A stretch of 64,000 nt of DNA from Trichosphaerium sp. ATCC 40318 (taxonomy: Eukaryota; Protista; Tubulinea): positions 124,001-188,000 of the forward strand of contig JALMLS010000321.1 of assembly GCA_038496445.1 (NCBI GenBank), written 5' to 3'. The translations under genes were made by a program, and so were the position numbers. The notes under the pieces were generated by a model that made no database searches, was not told where the DNA came from, and worked only from the letters and a program-made list of their open reading frames with translations. Below are positions 1 through 10,900 of this stretch, one piece after another. Each line of letters begins with the position of its first letter. The stretch's first letter is position 1.

Positions 1-101
1 ACTTGTTCTGTGCCGGCTTCTTTGACATTTACAGATAATTCAACGGCTTTTCCGCTTTCAAGCTTTTTAACAGAGTACGCCAAGCTTTGGCGTGTACTCA
101 T
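1..101 (-). CDS. First exon of a tandem paralog of the SPRY-SPRY-A2M gene; gene continues beyond the window's left edge
   Basis: Minus strand reads MSTRQSLAYSVKKLESGKAVELSVNVKEAGTEQ then GT, nearly identical to exon 1 at ~8197-8296 (MSTRQSSAYSVKKLESGKAVELSVNVKEAGTEQ). Confidence 0.8.
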   Translation of the reverse strand, partial: MSTRQSLAYSVKKLESGKAVELSVNVKEAGTEQ

Positions 102-426
102 GGCTATTAGTTGCTTTTTAATAGCTGCTTTTTGGAAGTTGTGGTCCAAAACCACTTTTGAAGCCCGAAAACCGAAGACACTGACTTTTTCAGTTGGATT
201 TTCAAATAAACTGATTAATAGTACCTTTTGTGTATGATTGGTTTGATTGTTTTTGGCTTGTTACCCCAAGTTTTGTGTTGTCACGTGCACAAAACAACAA
301 AATAGTTTGAGAAGATTCATTTGCGCTTACGTTTACTGTGACATGGCTAGGTTGCTCAGTAAGTGCGAAATTTTGCTCTGAAACAGTTTACCGTGATAAG
401 AACTTGACACGTGAACACTTTATTAA

Positions 427-685: not shown

Positions 686-3600
686 TTAAAGAGGAACAAT
701 AGTACACTTCAGACCATCATTCCATTGTTTGTATTCTGGTGTGTAATATAAAAATGCACATGAAGAAGGACCTGTGTAACTACCAGGAACAGCAGCCTAA
801 AATCATTGTAAATAAAGCACACCTTTAAAAGCAACTTGTGGCTCTGTCGTACCTTGACATCAATTTGAATTGTTGATTTTTGTTTTGGATCCATACCACG
901 CCAATACAGAACAACCTTTCTACCGATCACTTCATAGAAATCAATAGATTCACTCTTGACAAGCTCCTATCAAAATACGTCAATAAAAATCACGTGATCT
1001 AATAGCAATACCTTTAATTTCTCATGACGAGGCTCAAGGCCTCCTGGAAGTCCAATGATTGCGATGACCATGGGCAAGTCAGTATCTTTTTTATTTTCGA
1101 TATCGACTTGGATTTCACCAGTCTCTCCTTCCTTGATTGACTCTGGCTTCATTTGAGTTGCAATTGATATTGCACATTCATCAGAAGAAGGTCCTTTCAA
1201 TGTAAAATAATTGATATTCATATTGTACGGTATGTTTCCTGATCCCTTGGCCATTGTTATTTTAAATTCATGTTTGCCAGGCTTAAGTTTTTGTGCAGCT
1301 TCACTGAAATCTACAAAAAAACCGAAACAGTTAGTTGGTTGTTACACATCTCAACAATTTCTCTAGTACCAAGATCTATAGCCTCTATGCTTGTAGCAGA
1401 TACTGTCTTAGTGACTTTGATACCACCAATAGTCTAAAAAACCCAAGTAAGGTGAAAGTAACAAGAAACAACAAAACACAACAAATGAAATTGAAATGTT
1501 TGCCGTACCGCAACTAGGCTAATATCGCCGGTATCTGAAGTCTTATTCATTCGACCATATGTGAATATAGCACGAAGAGCTTGAACAGTTGATTGTGATG
1601 TACTCCAAGATCCATTTGATACTTGAGATTGAAGGTATTTCATTCCTGCTTGGATGTTCGATGAGTACTTGTTTGGATCATCACGCAACCATCCAGTAAC
1701 TGCAAGACCAGTTGTTTCAACAAATAGGGATTGTCCATATGACCTTACAATGGATGATGTGCCACCCTCTACCTTGCCATCTAAAGATCAGGTTAGGCGA
1801 TAAAGTCAATCAAGATGTGATGATAAAGTTCGACAAGGAGACTATATGCTTACCTTTGGCTTGTTTTGAAGCTAAATAGTCACCTGCTTTACATGCAGCT
1901 TTCTTGTTCTTGGTGTTGTTGAACACCATGTACATGCATGCCCACACATACGAATTTTTGTTATCAGATAGGGCTTTACCTTGAACATCAAGTTCCTTTG
2001 TAACGTCATTGGCAGCGCCAAGTTCAGTGAGGCCATAAAGACAGTATGCTGTAAAAAAAAAGTAAGAAATAAGTGCACGTTTAATGGTGGTTTGTACATA
2101 CCATTGTTGACGTCTGTTGGAGGTGAAGAGAAGGCATAGCGCCCGCGACCAAGTTGGAAGCCTCCTTTACCATCTTTACGTGATAAAAGCCAACTCTTGG
2201 CTCGATTAACAAGTGCCTTATCAACTATGAATCAAAGTCAATGGTTTTTACATAGCGACATGTTATTTGTTTCTTTTAAACGTACCTTCCATTGATTTAC
2301 CAAGATCTTGAAGCATCATTAATCCGTATGAAGTCAATGATTCATGAGCCGGTGATCCACCATACCTTAACACAAAGCATGAATAACAATGTTCAACGAC
2401 AAATTAGTTTTTGTTAGTTGCTTACCATTCGAATCCTGATGTTGTCTTTGTTTCATATCCAACTATTTTCTTGTATCCAATCATCATTTTACTGTGCATG
2501 TCTGAAATCAGGGATGGATCAATGCCAACTGTGCCATCATTGAAGAACATTCCAGCCATAGCCATTGGATATAGTGTTGATCCAACTTGTTCAAAACATC
2601 CACAAGGTGTACGAATCATACCTGTTAGAGCTCTTTGAAAGTTGGCTGCATTTGTTGGTAGGATAGCCACTTCAATATTTAGTGTTTTTGGAACTAAACA
2701 TAACAGACGTTAGATTCAAAGTTTCGAAACACGTGAAGAGCCAAGTGAAACAAAACAGCCTAAAATTACAACTTACCATAATCAGGCATTATGTTGAAAG
2801 TATGCTTTTCTGTTTTACTCTTACTGATAGTACCACTTGCAGATGCTTCCAATGGGAATCCCTTGGATACAGTGTAAGATACTTATGATACTCAAATATT
2901 GATAAAATGGTGGTACCTTTGGTTGAATACGAACACTGCGAACGATATTGTCCTCACGCTCACTTGAAGTACCAACGACTTTGAGCTCACTTGTGAGTGG
3001 TACATTCTGTATATCGATTGGAATGACAGCACGTTCTACAAATGTATTAGGTCACGTATAAGAAAACGTTAGAGTAGTGACATACGTCTCTGTTCTGGTC
3101 CAAGTGTGACTCCTTTTCCTTTGTTTGTTTCTGGATCCAAAAGAAAACCATCGCCACCCCATACTTCGAATCCAACGTTTGTGATTTTATGTCCGGTGTT
3201 ATTGACCATGAGTACAGGTAATTGTACTTTGTCACCGCAAGATACTTCGATTGGTACTTTGAGATCAACAGAGAAAGGTTCCTTGCAAGGAACAAGCCTT
3301 TTCAATAGTTAGGTAAACAACAACAAAACTACTGTGAGCAAAAGATAAAACGTACAACTCATTGTAGCCTAGTAGATGTGCATGATGAACAGAATCACAC
3401 ATGACATTAAAGCTTGTGATACTGTCATTCATGTCAAACTCAAAAGAGGCAAAACCTGTACAAGTTCAGTGAGTGAGTAAAGAAAAGAAGAAGTCCACAA
3501 AGAAAAAAAAAAGGCACATACCAAACTTATCGGTGACTAATCCTGCATTCCAGTACAAAGTCTCTTTGAATTCAGTTCTACACAAGTCTTAAACAATACA

Positions 3601-6600
3601 TAAAAAAGGTAAGTAATTGGTACCTGTCACCATCTGCTGTAGTAGGAGGCCTGAAAGCAAAAACAAAAATCAGTTAAGGTCAGGAAAGGTTAAAAAATGA
3701 AGTTGCATACGCGGTAAATGAGAACACCCTAAGCATCTTAGGTACGGCTTTGATTAATGGGACTGAAAGGACTAAAGGGTATATTATTAAATCGTCCATA
3801 TAGTAATATGTGTACCATCACGGTAACGGGAAAACCTACTAGGCGCTTCTAGATCAAAACTAGATGCCATCTTTCCCATTCTAGGTGCCATACTAGGAGC
3901 TGGCATAGACCTCATTCCCATGCTAGAAGGCATGCTTTCTTCCATTGACATCAATTTAGGAGCCTCTGCTCGACTTGATATCTTTGAAACCTTCTTCCTA
4001 GACTTAATCACTGGCTTTGATGGAACCTTGGTCTTCTTCTTTGGTGGTGCTTTTCTTTTTCTAGACATCATTGGTTTAGGTGAAGGGAGTGTTGATTGCT
4101 TGGACTTTGATTCTTTTGATTTACGAGCAATTGGCATTGCTTTCTTCTTAGACTTAATCACTGGCTTTGAAAGTTTCTTTTTTCCCTTGCTTGGTTTAGG
4201 CCTTGGAGCAGGTTCCACCGATTTTACTGAGCGTTCTACAGAAGCACTCTCAAGCATAATGTTATCTGAAAAAGCGCTATACTGCACTGATCTATCAAGC
4301 TCATACTGTACTTCTCTATTAAGCACATACTCAAGACTGTCGCTTTCAGAACTCATTGGATAAAATATCGTATCTTGTGTCTGTAACAGAAAAAACAAGT
4401 TAGTTTAACTGGATTCGAAGAAGAAAAAAAAGTACAAGAAAAATCTGATTTTTCTGGGTTAGACTTACACCAACGCTCAATCTAGGTGCGCAAGCTACAA
4501 CTTGTTGTGCTTTAGATCCATGTTCTTTCATAAAAGCTTCAAGATCTACTTTGTTTTTTACAAATACAAGTTTTCTCCAGCCCTAAAGTGCTTTTGTTAT
4601 TATTTGTTTTGGAAAAAACACGCAAAGATGTGGTTGCGTACCTGAGTACCAAGTAGCAAATCAATTGCTGTGTTTCCTTTCTCATCATGTTTGAGGTATA
4701 CGTGGGCATCGAATAGTTCTTTGACTTCACCTTCCAAGTAAGCCATTTCTTGCAATCTAGGTGCCTTTTTTCTGTTCTAAGCAAAACATTAGATTACAGT
4801 CGAGTTCTTATTTTATTCTCATCCTAATATTAGCAAAAATAAACATACTTCTACCATCTCTAGAACTGAGTTATCAACAACTGTAGTTCCAATAGTCGCA
4901 TCTCTACATTTGTACATGTTAATCACGCCAACAAAACACAACCGCAAATTTCGAAAATAAAACATACGCAAGAGGTTGTCCGTTTTCTCCTGTTGCATAC
5001 AATAGAACACGAACTTTGTTTCTTGGCGCATATACACCTCTTTCAGGCATGATTGAAACATTGACATGTTTGGATGGTTGTCTAGAACACGTGATTAGAA
5101 AAAAGAACAAGGAAACTAAATGGAATCAACTAACCTGTAAACAAGTCTTTCAGCAACAGCAAGTCCAGTTCTCATTTCATAAGCAGTCGCTCTTAGTACA
5201 CCTGCTGTTGATGTAGGAGGTGTAAAGAACAACTTAGATGCCTTCTTTCCTGTAATATCGACTTTGATAGAGAGAATCTCAGTGTCACGTTTAAACAAAC
5301 CAACATAATAAGCACCAGGTCCTAAACAACATCAGTAACATAATTGTAGACTAACACTTGAACTCACGTGTTGTCTGAAGTGTCATCTCGATGGATGTAT
5401 CAGTATTGACAAAGGCACCTTTCTTTGTGTTCAACACAGCTCCTGAAGACTCGAACAAGCTCTTATAACAAATTAGACACAAACAAAGGTGTTGACAATC
5501 GTACTTGTTTAAGATAGATAAGTTTATCAACACCAGCTGGTTTTAAAATACGCAAAGCATATTTTGAACCTTGTTTGGGTTTAAATGATAATTTACCACG
5601 TCCTTCATGTTCAGTCTTGAAAGCAGTAACTACTTTACTAAAAACAATAGTTAGCGGTATACACTACTAACAAAATAAACACGTGCCCACTCCTTGCTCT
5701 CACCAACTCTCCTTCAATATCTCCAGGATCTCCAGACGGTGTGAAGCATTGCAAGTATAATCCACAATGCAATCCATAGATAAGAGAACCTGACTCTGGA
5801 TACATACGAATATCGAGTTTCTAAAACAACGATTAGAACAATCACTAAGAATGACACTCCACACCTTTAGAAGAATAGGAATAGTTTTAGCAGTAGACTC
5901 TACACTACCTCCATCTTCAACAACGAATGTCAAACTGCCTTCACCAACCTCAATCTTGGCAGGAAGGTCAAAACTGACCATACAATTTCCATCAGCGCCA
6001 ACACTTGTGTCGCCTCTATCATCATAGTTAAAAGGATATTGTTGGTAATTATAATACCTGTATACTTCAGAACCATCAACACGTGCAACTGCATTCACTT
6101 TGGCGCCTACTGGAATGCCACCCTCAACACGTGAAACCTGGAAAGAAGGTTAGCTTTGTACCTGTAAATTGAAGACATACAGTGAGTGATGCTGAAGCTT
6201 TATCTCCTGGTCCAAGTCCTTTACGTAAGAACTCAGCTTGTAAGTTAAGCTTTGGTGGCTGGTATTCTCGAATATCAAATTTTCTTTCTTGAGTTACAAG
6301 CACGCAGTCATTTGCCCTAAACAACGTGTTGGAAAAGGGTTTTCTTGAACGAAAAATCAACGCACATTCCAGCAGCAAACTGTATTGTATACTCTCCACC
6401 TGCCTTTCCTTTTGGTATCTTCCACTGATGAGCAATGCAAGTCATGCCTTTGTTCTGGTTTTCGCCCTTGAGAGTAAATTCGTTGGAGCCTGTTGAAAGG
6501 AAGAAACAAAGTGAGCATGTCAAATAGTTTAGTAACATGTAAAACCAAGCGTTACCTGAAGGTCCTGTTATCTTTCCGTTAATCTGAGTAAGATTCATTA

Positions 6601-8296
6601 CATCTCCTCGCAGAGGTTCAAACGTATGAGCATCAAGGTATGTGACTATCAACAGATAATTAGTCACGAAAACTTGCTGAGAAGAATACTTACCTCTAAT
6701 CCAAACTGTTTCTTCTGGTTTGTACAACGGTTTATCTGTAGATACATATCCAATATATCTCTTTTTAGCATCGATTTTATAACTAGAAAGTGAAGGAGTG
6801 ACACCAAGAGTGAGAGAAGGTAGCGAAGTTTCAGCTATTAAAAAACATTATTACTACAAAACAAACTAACTTCTCACTTCAGCTTACCTTCAACATACTT
6901 AAACGGTGTGTAAATACCACCTGTGGTATTGATAGTAACAACAGAATAGTGGTCGAACCCAACAGTCGGATAGAAATCTCCTTTTGGCAAATTAAAGGTG
7001 CTTGTTACAACCTTTACTCCATTTTTTGTCCAGAACAATTTTTTGCCTTGAATTCCACAACCGATCACATCACCAACGCCAAAAGTGTTCTTTAGAGACT
7101 GAGGTTTCTGCTCTCCATCGTAAAAGACTAAATCGAACATTCAATTGGAATATGACTCAAGAAGAAGAAATCGCCTATACGTACCATCTCCGTCGTCACT
7201 GTGGTATCCATAACTACCTTTCACCCATCCAGGGAATTTAGTGTCTGTGGGGAATGACTGTAAAGCGTATCCCACGCCGACAACACTATCATAAAAAAGT
7301 GAGATAATTATTAGTAACTCCATAAAAGTGAGAGTACCCAGAATCTCCTTCTCGTTTCATACTGACAATGGACACTTCAAAGTACTTCAACGAGTTTAGG
7401 AACTGTACTGCATGTTCACCTCCGCGACCTGTCTTAGTTGGTCTTGAGCGTATAATAGATCCATTGACTATTGCACTATCACCATGACGTGTTCCTATCG
7501 CCAAAGGTAAACAAGAAAATAATCACGTGACTAGAAATACAAAAAAAAGTAATTAAAACTCACGTTCATTGTAAATCAGAGGTATCTGTAGTGTCCCCGT
7601 TGTCACGGTCATCGCAGCTTTGTTGTCGACACCAATACAAGGGAACAGACGAGGTCTAACGGATGGAGGTACTTTCTCAGGTGATTTACCAACTCGTTCT
7701 CCATTCAATGTCCTTTTAACCACTTAGAACATCTTCATACGTTGAAATAGTAATCGTACCAGAAAACAGTGCCATCTGTCTCTATACCACAGCCTACAAC
7801 TGAACCTTCACCGTACTTTGTAGACAATTCAGAAGCAATATCATTAAAATAGCTCTTTCCACTTTCACCATGGTAGCCCCATGAACTAATGGCGAATAAA
7901 CGTTTGCTTATCAAAAGATAACGGTTTTACTCAAATATAAGTTTAAAACGCACTTTTTGGCCCAACCTGGAAAGTCATCAGTCAATCCAATGTCTTTTGT
8001 TGCGTATCCAATGGCACAACCGCTATTTGGGTTAAGAAATAAAAACTTTTACTAAAACTGATTGGTACCCTTCTCCTTTATCTCCTACGTGAAGTGACTT
8101 TATGTTTACTTCATAATACGCGATATCTGCAGTACAGAGTTGAAATACCTTTATTTATCAACAAAACATCCTCAAAACGCTATAAAGAGTATCTTACTTG
8201 CTCCGTGCCAGCTTCTTTGACATTTACAGATAATTCAACTGCTTTTCCGCTTTCAAGCTTTTTAACAGAGTACGCAGAGCTTTGACGTGTACTCAT
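686..8296 (-). CDS. Multi-exon thioester-containing protein (bacterial-type alpha-2-macroglobulin) with two N-terminal SPRY domains
   Basis: SPRY1: YYEV, GCAIGYA, FPGW, SWGYHGESG, GEGSVVGCG. SPRY2: YFEV, PGWVKGSYGYHSDDG, GVGDVIGCG, FYPTVG. MG2: STDKPLYKPEETV. Also REYQPPKL and ETLYWNAG, thioester PCGCFEQ (CFEQ at 2587-2598), GFEW..AHESLTSYGL, and C-terminal VLYWRG..PGSYTGPSS.AFLYYTPE; stop at 686-688. Confidence 0.9.
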
Positions 8297-8717
8297 GGCT
8301 ATTAGCTGCTTTTTAAGAGCCGTGTATTGAATATGGTACAAAACCGAAAACCAAAGACAGAACCATGTTTTTTGTCGGGTTTTCAAAGAACTGTTGCCAT
8401 CAATATGCTGGTTCTCGTCTACGCATTTTTATGGGAACCCTTTGTGATTGGTTTTGTTGTGTCATTTCTTGGTTTCCAAATTCTGTTATCACGTCACTAA
8501 ACTAATTGAGAAGATTCCCTTGCTAAAGGAAAATGGCTAAACTGAAAAATGTAACGAGTATTGTTGTTCTATGACTGCAGACACTGGTTGATATTTAAAA
8601 GCCACAACCGGTTGCCAATGAGCTTAGTGCTGCACGAAAACATCAAAATAAGGTATTCATTCAGCGCTATTGTGGAATGACAACTAAGCCAGCTGCGAAT
8701 TGAAAGTGTTGTTGGCT

Positions 8718-10900
8718 TTATTGAAATTCAATAACAGAAAAAGTATATCCACCACAACTACATTTCCAAGGGGATACAACACTGCCACTTGAAATACTTG
8801 GTTTGGCTGGTACGTCCCATGGTGGTAAAGAAGATGGTATATTGCTCCACGTTGCTATTGTTAATTGTAAGAAAAAGATCACGTGATGAGAATTGTAGGT
8901 GAAAAAAAATCATAACAAGCAAATGCTTTCAAGAAAGATTCAAGGTTACCTTCGTCTTCAGCATTTGCTTTGTAGGATATTTGCTTGAATGTTTTGAAGT
9001 CAGGTTCTTTGTTCAATTCAATAACAATGTCTTTATCGCATCTGTTCAACACTGCCAATGCCATACTATCTTTTCCTGTGAAAGCAGCTGCTTGTATACA
9101 AGATAAATTGGCAAATCCAAGATTCTCAATACCAATGCTTGGAGCATCTGTTACCTTGTTTTTTGTGGTCAGCCAAAAAAGAAGAGCTCTGGTTATTCAA
9201 GCGCTTTGTAGACATACTTTAACTGGGTGCATCATTTCGCTTTTGTATAATGCAATGTAGTTTAGGAGTGCCATGAACTGTGAGGTTTCGCTTACTTGTG
9301 GGTAGGATACATCTCAACAAAGAGTTAAGTGGAAATATTACTTTAAATTGTATTTGAGTATTTGGGCGTACCTACAACCTTGATTATACCAGCAGTTGTG
9401 TCCCATGCTAGGTTTGTGGCTGAATGTATCATTACCATTTCAATTTGGTCGTGGTAGTTGACACCTGTAAGCATATGTCCCAACTAATCAAAACTGAGTT
9501 CAAGGCTAAAAAGGAAAAAAATTACCATGAAAAGAGCGTGTGCTGGACCATTACGAATAGACTCCAAGTACGGTTGATGTCCTGCTATATTATACTCAGT
9601 CATCCAAAACTTCATCTTTCTTCCAAAAATACTTTGGCTTTTATCTATGGCTGTTCTCAATTCAGCTTCGCCAAATGAAGCAAGTCTAAAACATAAGTTG
9701 TTAAAAAAACAGAAACGACTTAAAATGTTCCGTACACAGATGGCGCTTTGTCTACGCCATACTTTTTAGCTAATCCGTCATTCAGTTTGTACGAATGTAT
9801 TGTCAACGCATCAAGTATATCAACATATTTACTAAGCTCATTATTCCAAGGACCAGGCCTGGTAAGAATCTGTTTCGAGCGAAAATTATAAGAAACAGAA
9901 CAAATCGTTTCGAAAAGAGTCTTACTTCACCAAATGACGCAACAGCGGCAATCTTTGCATTAGGAAATAGCTCTATAGAGTATGTTAAGTTTTAATTTAC
10001 CCAAAAACGTGATAGGTGTTTTAGGGACGTACTTCTGGCATATGCAATAACAGGTTTGCATTTTTCCATGTACACTGTAGAGTTTGGAAACACAGGATTG
10101 TAGCGCTTGAGGTAATACTCGTTACCAAGCTCAAGATACATGACATCAATATTCGATGCTTTTATTGTATCCAGCGATGCCTTGATTTCCTCAACAGTCA
10201 TAGTAAGCAAGTTAAGGTCAATCACCGCTGATTCTAAAACAAATGTTAAGTTTTTCAATGGATTATATGATTGCGCACGTGATTTCACATGTGACACGAC
10301 TCCATTAAAAAAATTCTTTGCGCTGAAGGTATTGGCAGGAAACTTGGCCGTTGGTACTGCCCATTGTTTGCAAGCAGAATCATTGCATCCTAAACGAAAA
10401 GAAGAACTGTTAATCTTTCTGGTGTATCACGAAATACCTTTTACATATTGTGATGACGTAAGGTTCCAGTAGTTTGCAACTGCGCCACCTAAATTTATTT
10501 GAGTTCACTAGTGAACCACGTGAGGGACCAAGACTGAGGTTCGAAAATGAGAGTGTTGGCGATAAGGTACTGCAAATAGTTGTTTCTGAGCATATTGATG
10601 TTTTTTAAATTTTATTTGGATTATTCTAAGTTATAGTGTTTAATAGTACCTGGAAACCGTACACCACCCATGAATGTGCCTCCAAGACCTGTTTTTAATG
10701 CAGCTAAAAAATATTAGTGTCAAATACCGATCCAAATACCTTTTCATCGCACGTGAATCGTAGGTAAGCTGAGCACTTATCCACACGTCATTTCCAGCAA
10801 ATAGCATCGGATTGACAGGTACGCCGTTAGAAACAGTGAGTGTAGCTCCATAAGTTGATGAAACAAACGCAAGAAAGCCAATAAAGACTAGCAGCTGCAT
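8718..10900 (-). CDS. Secreted clan GH-A glycoside hydrolase (GH51/GH44/GH79-like), multi-exon
   Basis: Signal peptide MQLLVFIGFLAFVSSTYGA; RFPGG..ANYW; acid/base motif ELGNE; DALTIHSY; nucleophile motif WMTEYN; ends GGYTFSVIEFQ*. Confidence 0.75.

Follow-up and report, generated by a model that had tools for sequence, protein, structure and literature searches.

Alpha-2-macroglobulin (A2M), complement C3 and C4, the insect TEPs and bacterial A2M are textbook extracytoplasmic effectors. The animal A2M/TEP proteins are secreted, glycosylated and disulphide-rich and carry the thioester motif GCGEQ, and the classical bacterial A2Ms are periplasmic lipoproteins of about 1650 aa with extra bacterial MG domains, those of the YfaS/MagD type being without a thioester. 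To our knowledge, every A2M/TEP protein characterised has its site of action outside the cytosol, and an export signal is typical of these proteins. The SPRY domains of RanBP9/10, SPRYD3 and Vid30, on the other side, are cytosolic or nuclear protein-binding modules, and RanBP9/10 and Vid30 belong to a cellular ubiquitin-ligase complex. A gene that unites both kinds of module is present in a stretch of 64,000 nt from the protist Trichosphaerium sp. ATCC 40318 (contig JALMLS010000321.1, positions 124,001 to 188,000), which is called the window here and whose numbering is used throughout. On the minus strand, 8296 to 686 form one gene of 39 exons for a protein of 1811 aa (1811 codons plus stop), in which two SPRY domains precede a full macroglobulin scaffold with an intact GCFEQ motif. 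This arrangement had been proposed in a preliminary description made from the letters of the window, and the Pfam matches, the family profile and the direct reading given below bear it out; strand, start codon (ATG at 8296) and stop codon (688-686) likewise agree with the refined gene model. We consider, with a probability of about 0.5, that the product acts within the cell as a covalent trap or tagger set off by cleavage.

The gene model was obtained by dynamic programming and then refined with a homologue alignment and with RNA joints. For the latter, four public runs labelled "RNA?" (X1-X4) were compared with positions 2900-8899. Contigs from three of the four runs omit modelled introns at exact GT-AG borders and are therefore cDNA, and run X3 yielded nothing. 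Spliced contigs confirm 17 of the 38 introns. Fifteen of these are listed joints (8197-8149, 8068-8023, 7953-7886, 7759-7713, 7563-7495, 7337-7286, 7184-7128, 6693-6646, 5686-5638, 5134-5082, 4967-4904, 4848-4777, 4641-4583, 3355-3298, and 3085-3036), and two are loose contig ends. At the intron between SPRY2 and the macroglobulin part (6887-6835), a loose end that an X4 contig has at 6888 agrees in 28 of its 30 letters with the sequence ending at 6834, compared to 7 of 30 for the unspliced genome; at intron 6057-6016 the loose end fits the next exon in 24 of 27 letters and the unspliced genome in 5 of 27. Exons 1-8 are connected by spliced contigs, and exon 8 (SPRY2) is linked to exon 9 (macroglobulin start) by one contig, so that the single transcript presumed in the preliminary description finds its counterpart in RNA. 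An X1 contig of 839 nt traverses exons 4-6, with pieces at 7341-7885 and unlisted ends that may reach further. Identity to the window is about 99% for run X2 and 90-99% for runs X1 and X4, which bear another organism code, so that at least two related strains or species express the fusion. The listed differences to related transcripts number 40, of which 29 leave the amino acid unchanged (synonymous to other, 18:8 in the SPRY part and 11:3 in the A2M part), an excess that supports the reading frame and shows purifying selection on both modules.

In principle, two neighbouring genes or an assembly join could have been read as one, since no single contig spans the gene and the joint of exons 8 and 9 occurs in one listed contig (X4, depth 2.6). 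In that contig, however, 6888 is connected to 6834 across GT-AG borders without a shift of frame, and what separates the two parts is a 53-nt intron in a continuous open reading frame, with no room for a terminator plus a promoter. An artificial fusion is thus extremely unlikely and in our view largely refuted. The locus is a genuine, expressed single gene that joins a SPRY pair to a macroglobulin scaffold, with the following features.

686-8296, minus strand: whole coding region of the gene model, with 17 of 38 introns supported by spliced contigs
8297-8307, minus strand: 5' untranslated leader; cDNA 5' end at 8307, first ATG at 8296
7564-8296, minus strand: SPRY domain 1, exons 1-5, aa 1-175; Pfam SPRY E 1.5e-5 (exon 4), introns 1-5 confirmed by RNA
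6888-7494, minus strand: SPRY domain 2, exons 6-8, aa 176-341; Pfam SPRY E 9.6e-8, introns 6 and 7 confirmed by RNA
6835-6887, minus strand: intron 8, the SPRY/macroglobulin junction, seen in the loose end of the X4 contig
4469-6834, minus strand: linker and N-terminal MG domain array, exons 9-22; Pfam MG2 E 2e-6 and colinear homologue alignment
6760-6710, minus strand: first MG motif, RYIGYVSTDKPLYKPEE, colinear with the start of the homologues' mature chains
5638-5686, minus strand: GC-AG intron (intron 15); X2 contig joint 5637>5687, ends CT..GC, 128 letters on the shorter side
3840-4380, minus strand: exon 23, a basic disordered loop of 181 aa at the bait-region position, between the LLGTQGWR and FKETLYW motifs
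3550-3570, minus strand: FKETLYW motif, from the homologue alignment; Pfam A2M E 0.001 on the following exon 28
1509-2693, minus strand: thioester domain, exons 31-35; Pfam TED_complement E 0.006 (start) and E 0.011 (end) on separate exons, and family profile
2587-2601, minus strand: thioester motif GCFEQ, aa 1335-1339, read directly and aligned with the invariant family motif
686-1433, minus strand: C-terminal MG8/receptor-binding-type domain, exons 36-39; the alignment reaches the last residues of the homologues
1-125, minus strand: first exon and leader of a tandem paralogue with its ATG near 101, 92.8% identical to 8196-8320 and extending beyond the window

Both N-terminal domains are recognised as SPRY (PF00622) on single exons, the second with a Pfam score of 32.6 bits against a curated cut-off of 26.3, and they share 34% identity with each other (E 2e-23). 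Among the sequences of solved structures, SPRY2 matches RanBP10, RanBP9, SPRYD3 and Vid30 (E 0.002-0.03). No TRIM or B30.2 chain appears among these matches at E <= 1, in a search that did not treat the PRY subdomain separately, and a TRIM-type B30.2 (PRY-SPRY) assignment was rejected in favor of these closest matches. The likeness to TRIM proteins drawn in the preliminary description is therefore weak, since the SPRY domains resemble those of RanBP9/10, SPRYD3 and Vid30. The combination with a macroglobulin was not seen among the relatives considered: none of about 150 representatives of the macroglobulin family aligns to residues 1-340, PF00622 is absent from the precomputed Pfam domains of 240 listed relatives, and a SPRY domain is carried by none of about 270 relatives inspected. 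A literature search likewise returned nothing on SPRY plus A2M or on cytosolic macroglobulins of protists, absence from the literature being no proof, and this agrees with the initial impression that the architecture is not a described one. One candidate from that search, a preprint on the "CAGE complex" (10.1101/2025.09.22.677704), was discarded because its subject is a different protein without a thioester.

After a linker of about 25 residues behind SPRY2, the macroglobulin chain starts where the mature chains of the bacterial homologues start, and it is colinear with homologues of roughly 1390 aa to the last residue. Residues 360-1810 match positions 24-1384 of a family profile (built from 12 family members, 1387 positions) in one continuous match of 1344 bits. 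Single exons are recognised by Pfam as MG2, A2M and TED_complement in colinear order, which is the domain order of A2M/TEP proteins. The thioester signature C-x-E-Q is present as GCFEQ, and all motifs quoted in the preliminary description were recovered (GCFEQ at 2601-2587, GFEW, HESLTSYGL at 2346-2320, VLYWRG at 912-895, and PGSYTG at 787-770). In the alignment of the 12 family members the thioester Cys is the sole invariant Cys, with one further Cys that is nearly so; there is therefore no conserved set of disulphides that a reducing compartment could break. The Cys-Gln pair of the putative reactive thioester is intact.

The low-complexity loop encoded by exon 23 is rich in Ser (18%), Lys (16%) and Pro (11%), has a net charge of +23, includes KRKAPPKKKTK at 4059-4027, and is without a Pfam match. 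It follows LLGTQGWR (4656-4574) and precedes FKETLYW (3570-3550), which we take to be the counterpart of FPETW(L/I)W, the motif at the start of MG7 that comes right behind the bait region in A2M and behind the anaphylatoxin domain in C3. The spacer between both motifs measures 247 aa, compared to a family median of 168, and ranks 140th of 143. An X1 contig covers 3955-4177 of the exon. Within it, a direct repeat of 29 nt (3992-4020 and 4142-4170, 96.6% identical) encodes SKPVIKS(K/R)KK, from which it follows that the loop grew by internal duplication. By its position the basic loop is a candidate for a cleavable bait segment. Alternatively, the protein might be a scaffold whose thioester is not used and whose Lys-rich loop targets it to the nucleus or binds nucleic acid or acidic lipid. 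The loop, with its KRKAPPKKKTK and the repeats, indeed resembles classical basic nuclear-targeting motifs and is strongly charged, but it sits exactly at the variable bait spacer of the family, the thioester Cys and Gln and the surrounding motifs of the thioester domain are conserved, and most changes in the A2M part are synonymous, so that we regard this option as very unlikely.

Relatives of the gene carry foreign domains at the same place. In Anaeramoeba ignava KAJ5074730.1, ubiquitin-like repeats are followed by a true ubiquitin that ends in LRLRGG about 60 aa before MG7. A transcript of the diplonemid Namystynia karyoxenos has an Hsp70 domain (aa 933-1411) between LLGTQGWR (aa 621) and the A2M domain, and one probably bacterial relative has a carboxypeptidase-regulatory-like domain (aa 755-821) upstream of MG7. 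The bait site therefore tolerates large inserts, and those of the eukaryotic relatives, ubiquitin and Hsp70, are cytosolic proteins.

An export signal as in the characterised A2M/TEP proteins was found neither by hydropathy nor at the cDNA 5' end. The N-terminus of the protein, MSTRQSSAYSVKK, leads directly into SPRY1. Within the first 60 residues the highest 10-residue Kyte-Doolittle mean is 1.37, compared to 2.0-3.6 in 18 bacterial relatives, all of which (18 of 18 checked) have a hydrophobic N-terminus, and the highest 19-residue mean in the whole protein is 1.33. By hydropathy, a crude measure and the sole one applied, there is thus no signal peptide and no transmembrane segment. An X2 contig spans 8195-8307 and continues with 21 nt whose reverse complement, GTATCAACGCAGAGTACGGGG, is recognisable as a template-switch cDNA adapter. 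The cDNA therefore ends 11 nt before the ATG, the 11-nt leader (8297-8307) contains no ATG itself, and there is no read depth at 8308-8899 in any run, hence no sign of an expressed upstream exon. The absence of a signal peptide that the preliminary description had read from the N-terminus is upheld by both lines of evidence, and the upstream exon that it had envisaged as a possible source of such a peptide was not seen. We regard the cDNA end at 8307 as good evidence for the 5' end of the transcript, short of proof.

Among the protist relatives those with complete N-termini also are without a signal peptide, except the diplonemid. Three eukaryotic family members begin with MGxxx(S/T), which can be read as a myristoylation-type motif. 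Several longer metagenomic family members, probably bacterial, are without a signal peptide as well, and their N-termini look like the N-terminal segment of anti-sigma factors, which would be another swap of the N-terminus in this family. Because it has no secretion signal, the protein from Trichosphaerium probably works inside the cell. A contrary view would have it reach the phagosome, the lysosome or the outside of the cell by an unconventional route and act there on prey or on secreted proteases, as is presumed for its bacterial relatives, with the SPRY pair as a sorting handle. Such a location would conform to the characterised A2M/TEP proteins and to the signal peptides of the bacterial sister proteins, and amoebae digest bacteria in phagosomes. 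We nevertheless judge it to be quite unlikely, as it would have to be reconciled with the missing signal peptide and transmembrane segment, with a transcript start 11 nt before the ATG, and with the myristoylation-type N-termini and ubiquitin inserts of related protist proteins, which are cytosolic features.

According to the covalent-trap model favored here, the protein would stay in the cytosol with its thioester buried. Cleavage of the exposed basic loop by a protease would then trigger the rearrangement usual for the family and release the thioester domain, and the freed thioester could bond covalently to the protease itself or to an adjacent target. The SPRY pair, which would stand before the first MG domain in place of a signal peptide, might either bring a specific partner near the reactive site or dock the loaded trap onto other machinery. 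In C3b the thioester domain rests beside MG1 after activation, and by analogy an N-terminal SPRY pair would adjoin the reactive site once the protein is activated. The recognise-and-trap function suggested in the preliminary description is a plausible candidate.

Several observations weigh against this model. Firstly, an exposed thioester in the cytosol would meet millimolar glutathione. Secondly, the basic loop could be a nuclear-targeting or nucleic-acid-binding segment. Thirdly, the argument from the missing export signal depends on hydropathy and on the cDNA end, and the same adapter also occurs at the internal positions 8026 and 3384; the X2 library therefore contains truncated cDNAs, and 8307 may be a truncated end too. 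Lastly, 21 of the 38 introns rest on homology and splice signals, in a gene that no single contig covers as a whole.

The trap could also serve the household of the cell by buffering its own cytosolic Lys/Arg-directed proteases, for instance metacaspase-like or calpain-like enzymes, with the SPRY pair as a tether to a cellular complex. The abundance of Lys and Arg in the loop at the bait position and the resemblance of the SPRY domains to RanBP9/10 and Vid30 with their ubiquitin-ligase complex would both suit this purpose, and there is no link between the gene and infection. The tandem duplication, however, suggests diversification, which is more typical of defence genes, and the bait inserts vary among relatives; a housekeeping trap is accordingly rather unlikely in our estimation. 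The gene belongs to a lineage-specific family with multiple copies, and this would suit a role in defence against viruses, bacteria inside the cell or the proteases of either; that role is conjecture. The ubiquitin and Hsp70 at the bait site of the relatives, together with the gene in the window, lead to the idea that bait loops are decoys for intracellular proteases. In its broadest and tentative form, which we find rather unlikely, this idea would have amoebae and some other protists run a complement-like intracellular surveillance, with a multigene family of signal-less thioester proteins from bacteria, bait loops that decoy the proteases of pathogens or viruses, and, in the present lineage, SPRY heads that aim the tag or couple capture to disposal.

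With respect to origin, the thioester exon retrieved 489 matches among representative sequences (best identity 46%). The closest relatives of the macroglobulin part, at about 41% identity across roughly 1250 columns, come from Planctomycetota and Myxococcota; they are about 1350-1450 aa long, and their cultured sources include Archangium, Cystobacter and Rubripirellula. Members of the family are also found here and there among protists (Anaeramoeba, Cantina, Flabellula, Physarum, and a diplonemid). When compared to solved structures, the family profile matches human A2M (1e-64), reaching residue 1457 of 1474, CD109 (1e-53), C3 (2e-49) and TEP1 (4e-43), whereas E. coli YfhM (9e-22) and Salmonella A2M (1e-15) are matched over about 300 positions. 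With the single thioester exon as query, phmmer gave no match at E <= 1 among the PDB sequences. Judged by these profile scores, the family is closer in sequence to animal A2M/CD109/C3 than to classical YfhM. Pfam assigned TED_complement, with the bacterial bMG10 no better than E 0.2, and the classical type I class of bacterial A2M (YfhM/ECAM) was rejected for the gene on the grounds of these scores. The "bacterial class" of the preliminary description thus holds insofar as the nearest relatives are bacterial, but not in the sense of the classical YfhM/ECAM or YfaS/MagD proteins.

FastTree groups the gene with the protist sequences in one clade (support 95), whereas IQ-TREE with a site-heterogeneous mixture model places it beside a Planctomycetota clade (support 89). 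In an approximately unbiased (AU) test the placement with protists was not rejected (p 0.28). Since the trees conflict and the test rejects neither placement, we make no claim on age or on the number of transfers; under either tree the gene nests in a largely bacterial radiation. Its many introns indicate a resident eukaryotic gene. They are 42-88 nt long (median about 53 nt), 37 of the 38 being of the GT-AG and one of the GC-AG type; their 3' ends read TAG in 24 and CAG in just 6 of the 38 cases. Of the anciently domesticated bacterial-type gene in the preliminary description, the bacterial kinship and the residence in a eukaryotic genome are supported by the nearest relatives and the introns, and the word "ancient" goes further than the conflicting trees.

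The tandem paralogue at the edge of the window begins with MSTRQSLAYSVKK and is offset by 8195 nt. An element of 120 nt (8726-8849 and 422-539, 88.7% identical) lies about 430-550 nt upstream of the ATG of each copy, and the remaining intergenic DNA between the two copies no longer aligns. The element may have a regulatory function and have been conserved as part of the duplicated unit; its copy at 8726-8849 has no RNA coverage in the runs compared, and neither the neighboring open reading frames nor the two element copies have Pfam matches. Two irregularities were seen in run X2: a contig at 7496-7615 omits 118 nt with non-canonical ends and has 16 other letters between them, and a loose end at 7338 fits exon 7 in just 23 of 27 letters. 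Both probably stem from transcripts of paralogous SPRY-thioester genes of the same organism.

If the proposed function is true, covalent-capture chemistry would have been moved into the cytosol of a phagocytic protist. In sequence space the family is intermediate between bacterial proteins and animal A2M/C3, which bears on the origin of the animal thioester proteins, and a trap that needs neither disulphides nor secretion could serve as a tool for protease capture. Compared to known systems, the SPRY domains match in sequence those of RanBP9/RanBP10, SPRYD3 and yeast Vid30/Gid1, but here a tandem pair of them forms the N-terminal part of a thioester protein. With the GCFEQT family of Planctomycetota and Myxococcota (Archangium violaceum, Cystobacter fuscus, Rubripirellula sp.) the protein shares the thioester motif, the disordered spacer before MG7 and the C-terminus; unlike the gene in the window, these bacterial members have a signal peptide and are without SPRY domains and introns. 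They are annotated as "MG2 domain-containing protein" or "A-macroglobulin complement component", and no functional study of them was found. The protist members Anaeramoeba ignava KAJ5074214.1, A. flamelloides KAJ3432316.1 and the "polyubiquitin-like" A. ignava KAJ5074730.1, together with the Cantina, Flabellula and Physarum transcripts, are signal-less like the protein described here and have the GCFEQT thioester and a variable bait insert, with SPRY domains in none of them. The type I proteins YfhM/ECAM and Salmonella A2M, which keep the thioester, and the type II proteins YfaS/MagD belong to the same superfamily and are far more distant. Finally, animal A2M, A2ML1, CD109, C3/C4 and insect TEP1 have the same domain order, the thioester domain, and a bait or anaphylatoxin region at the corresponding position, whereas the protein from Trichosphaerium has GCFEQ instead of GCGEQ, dispenses with a signal peptide, and carries a SPRY pair at its N-terminus.

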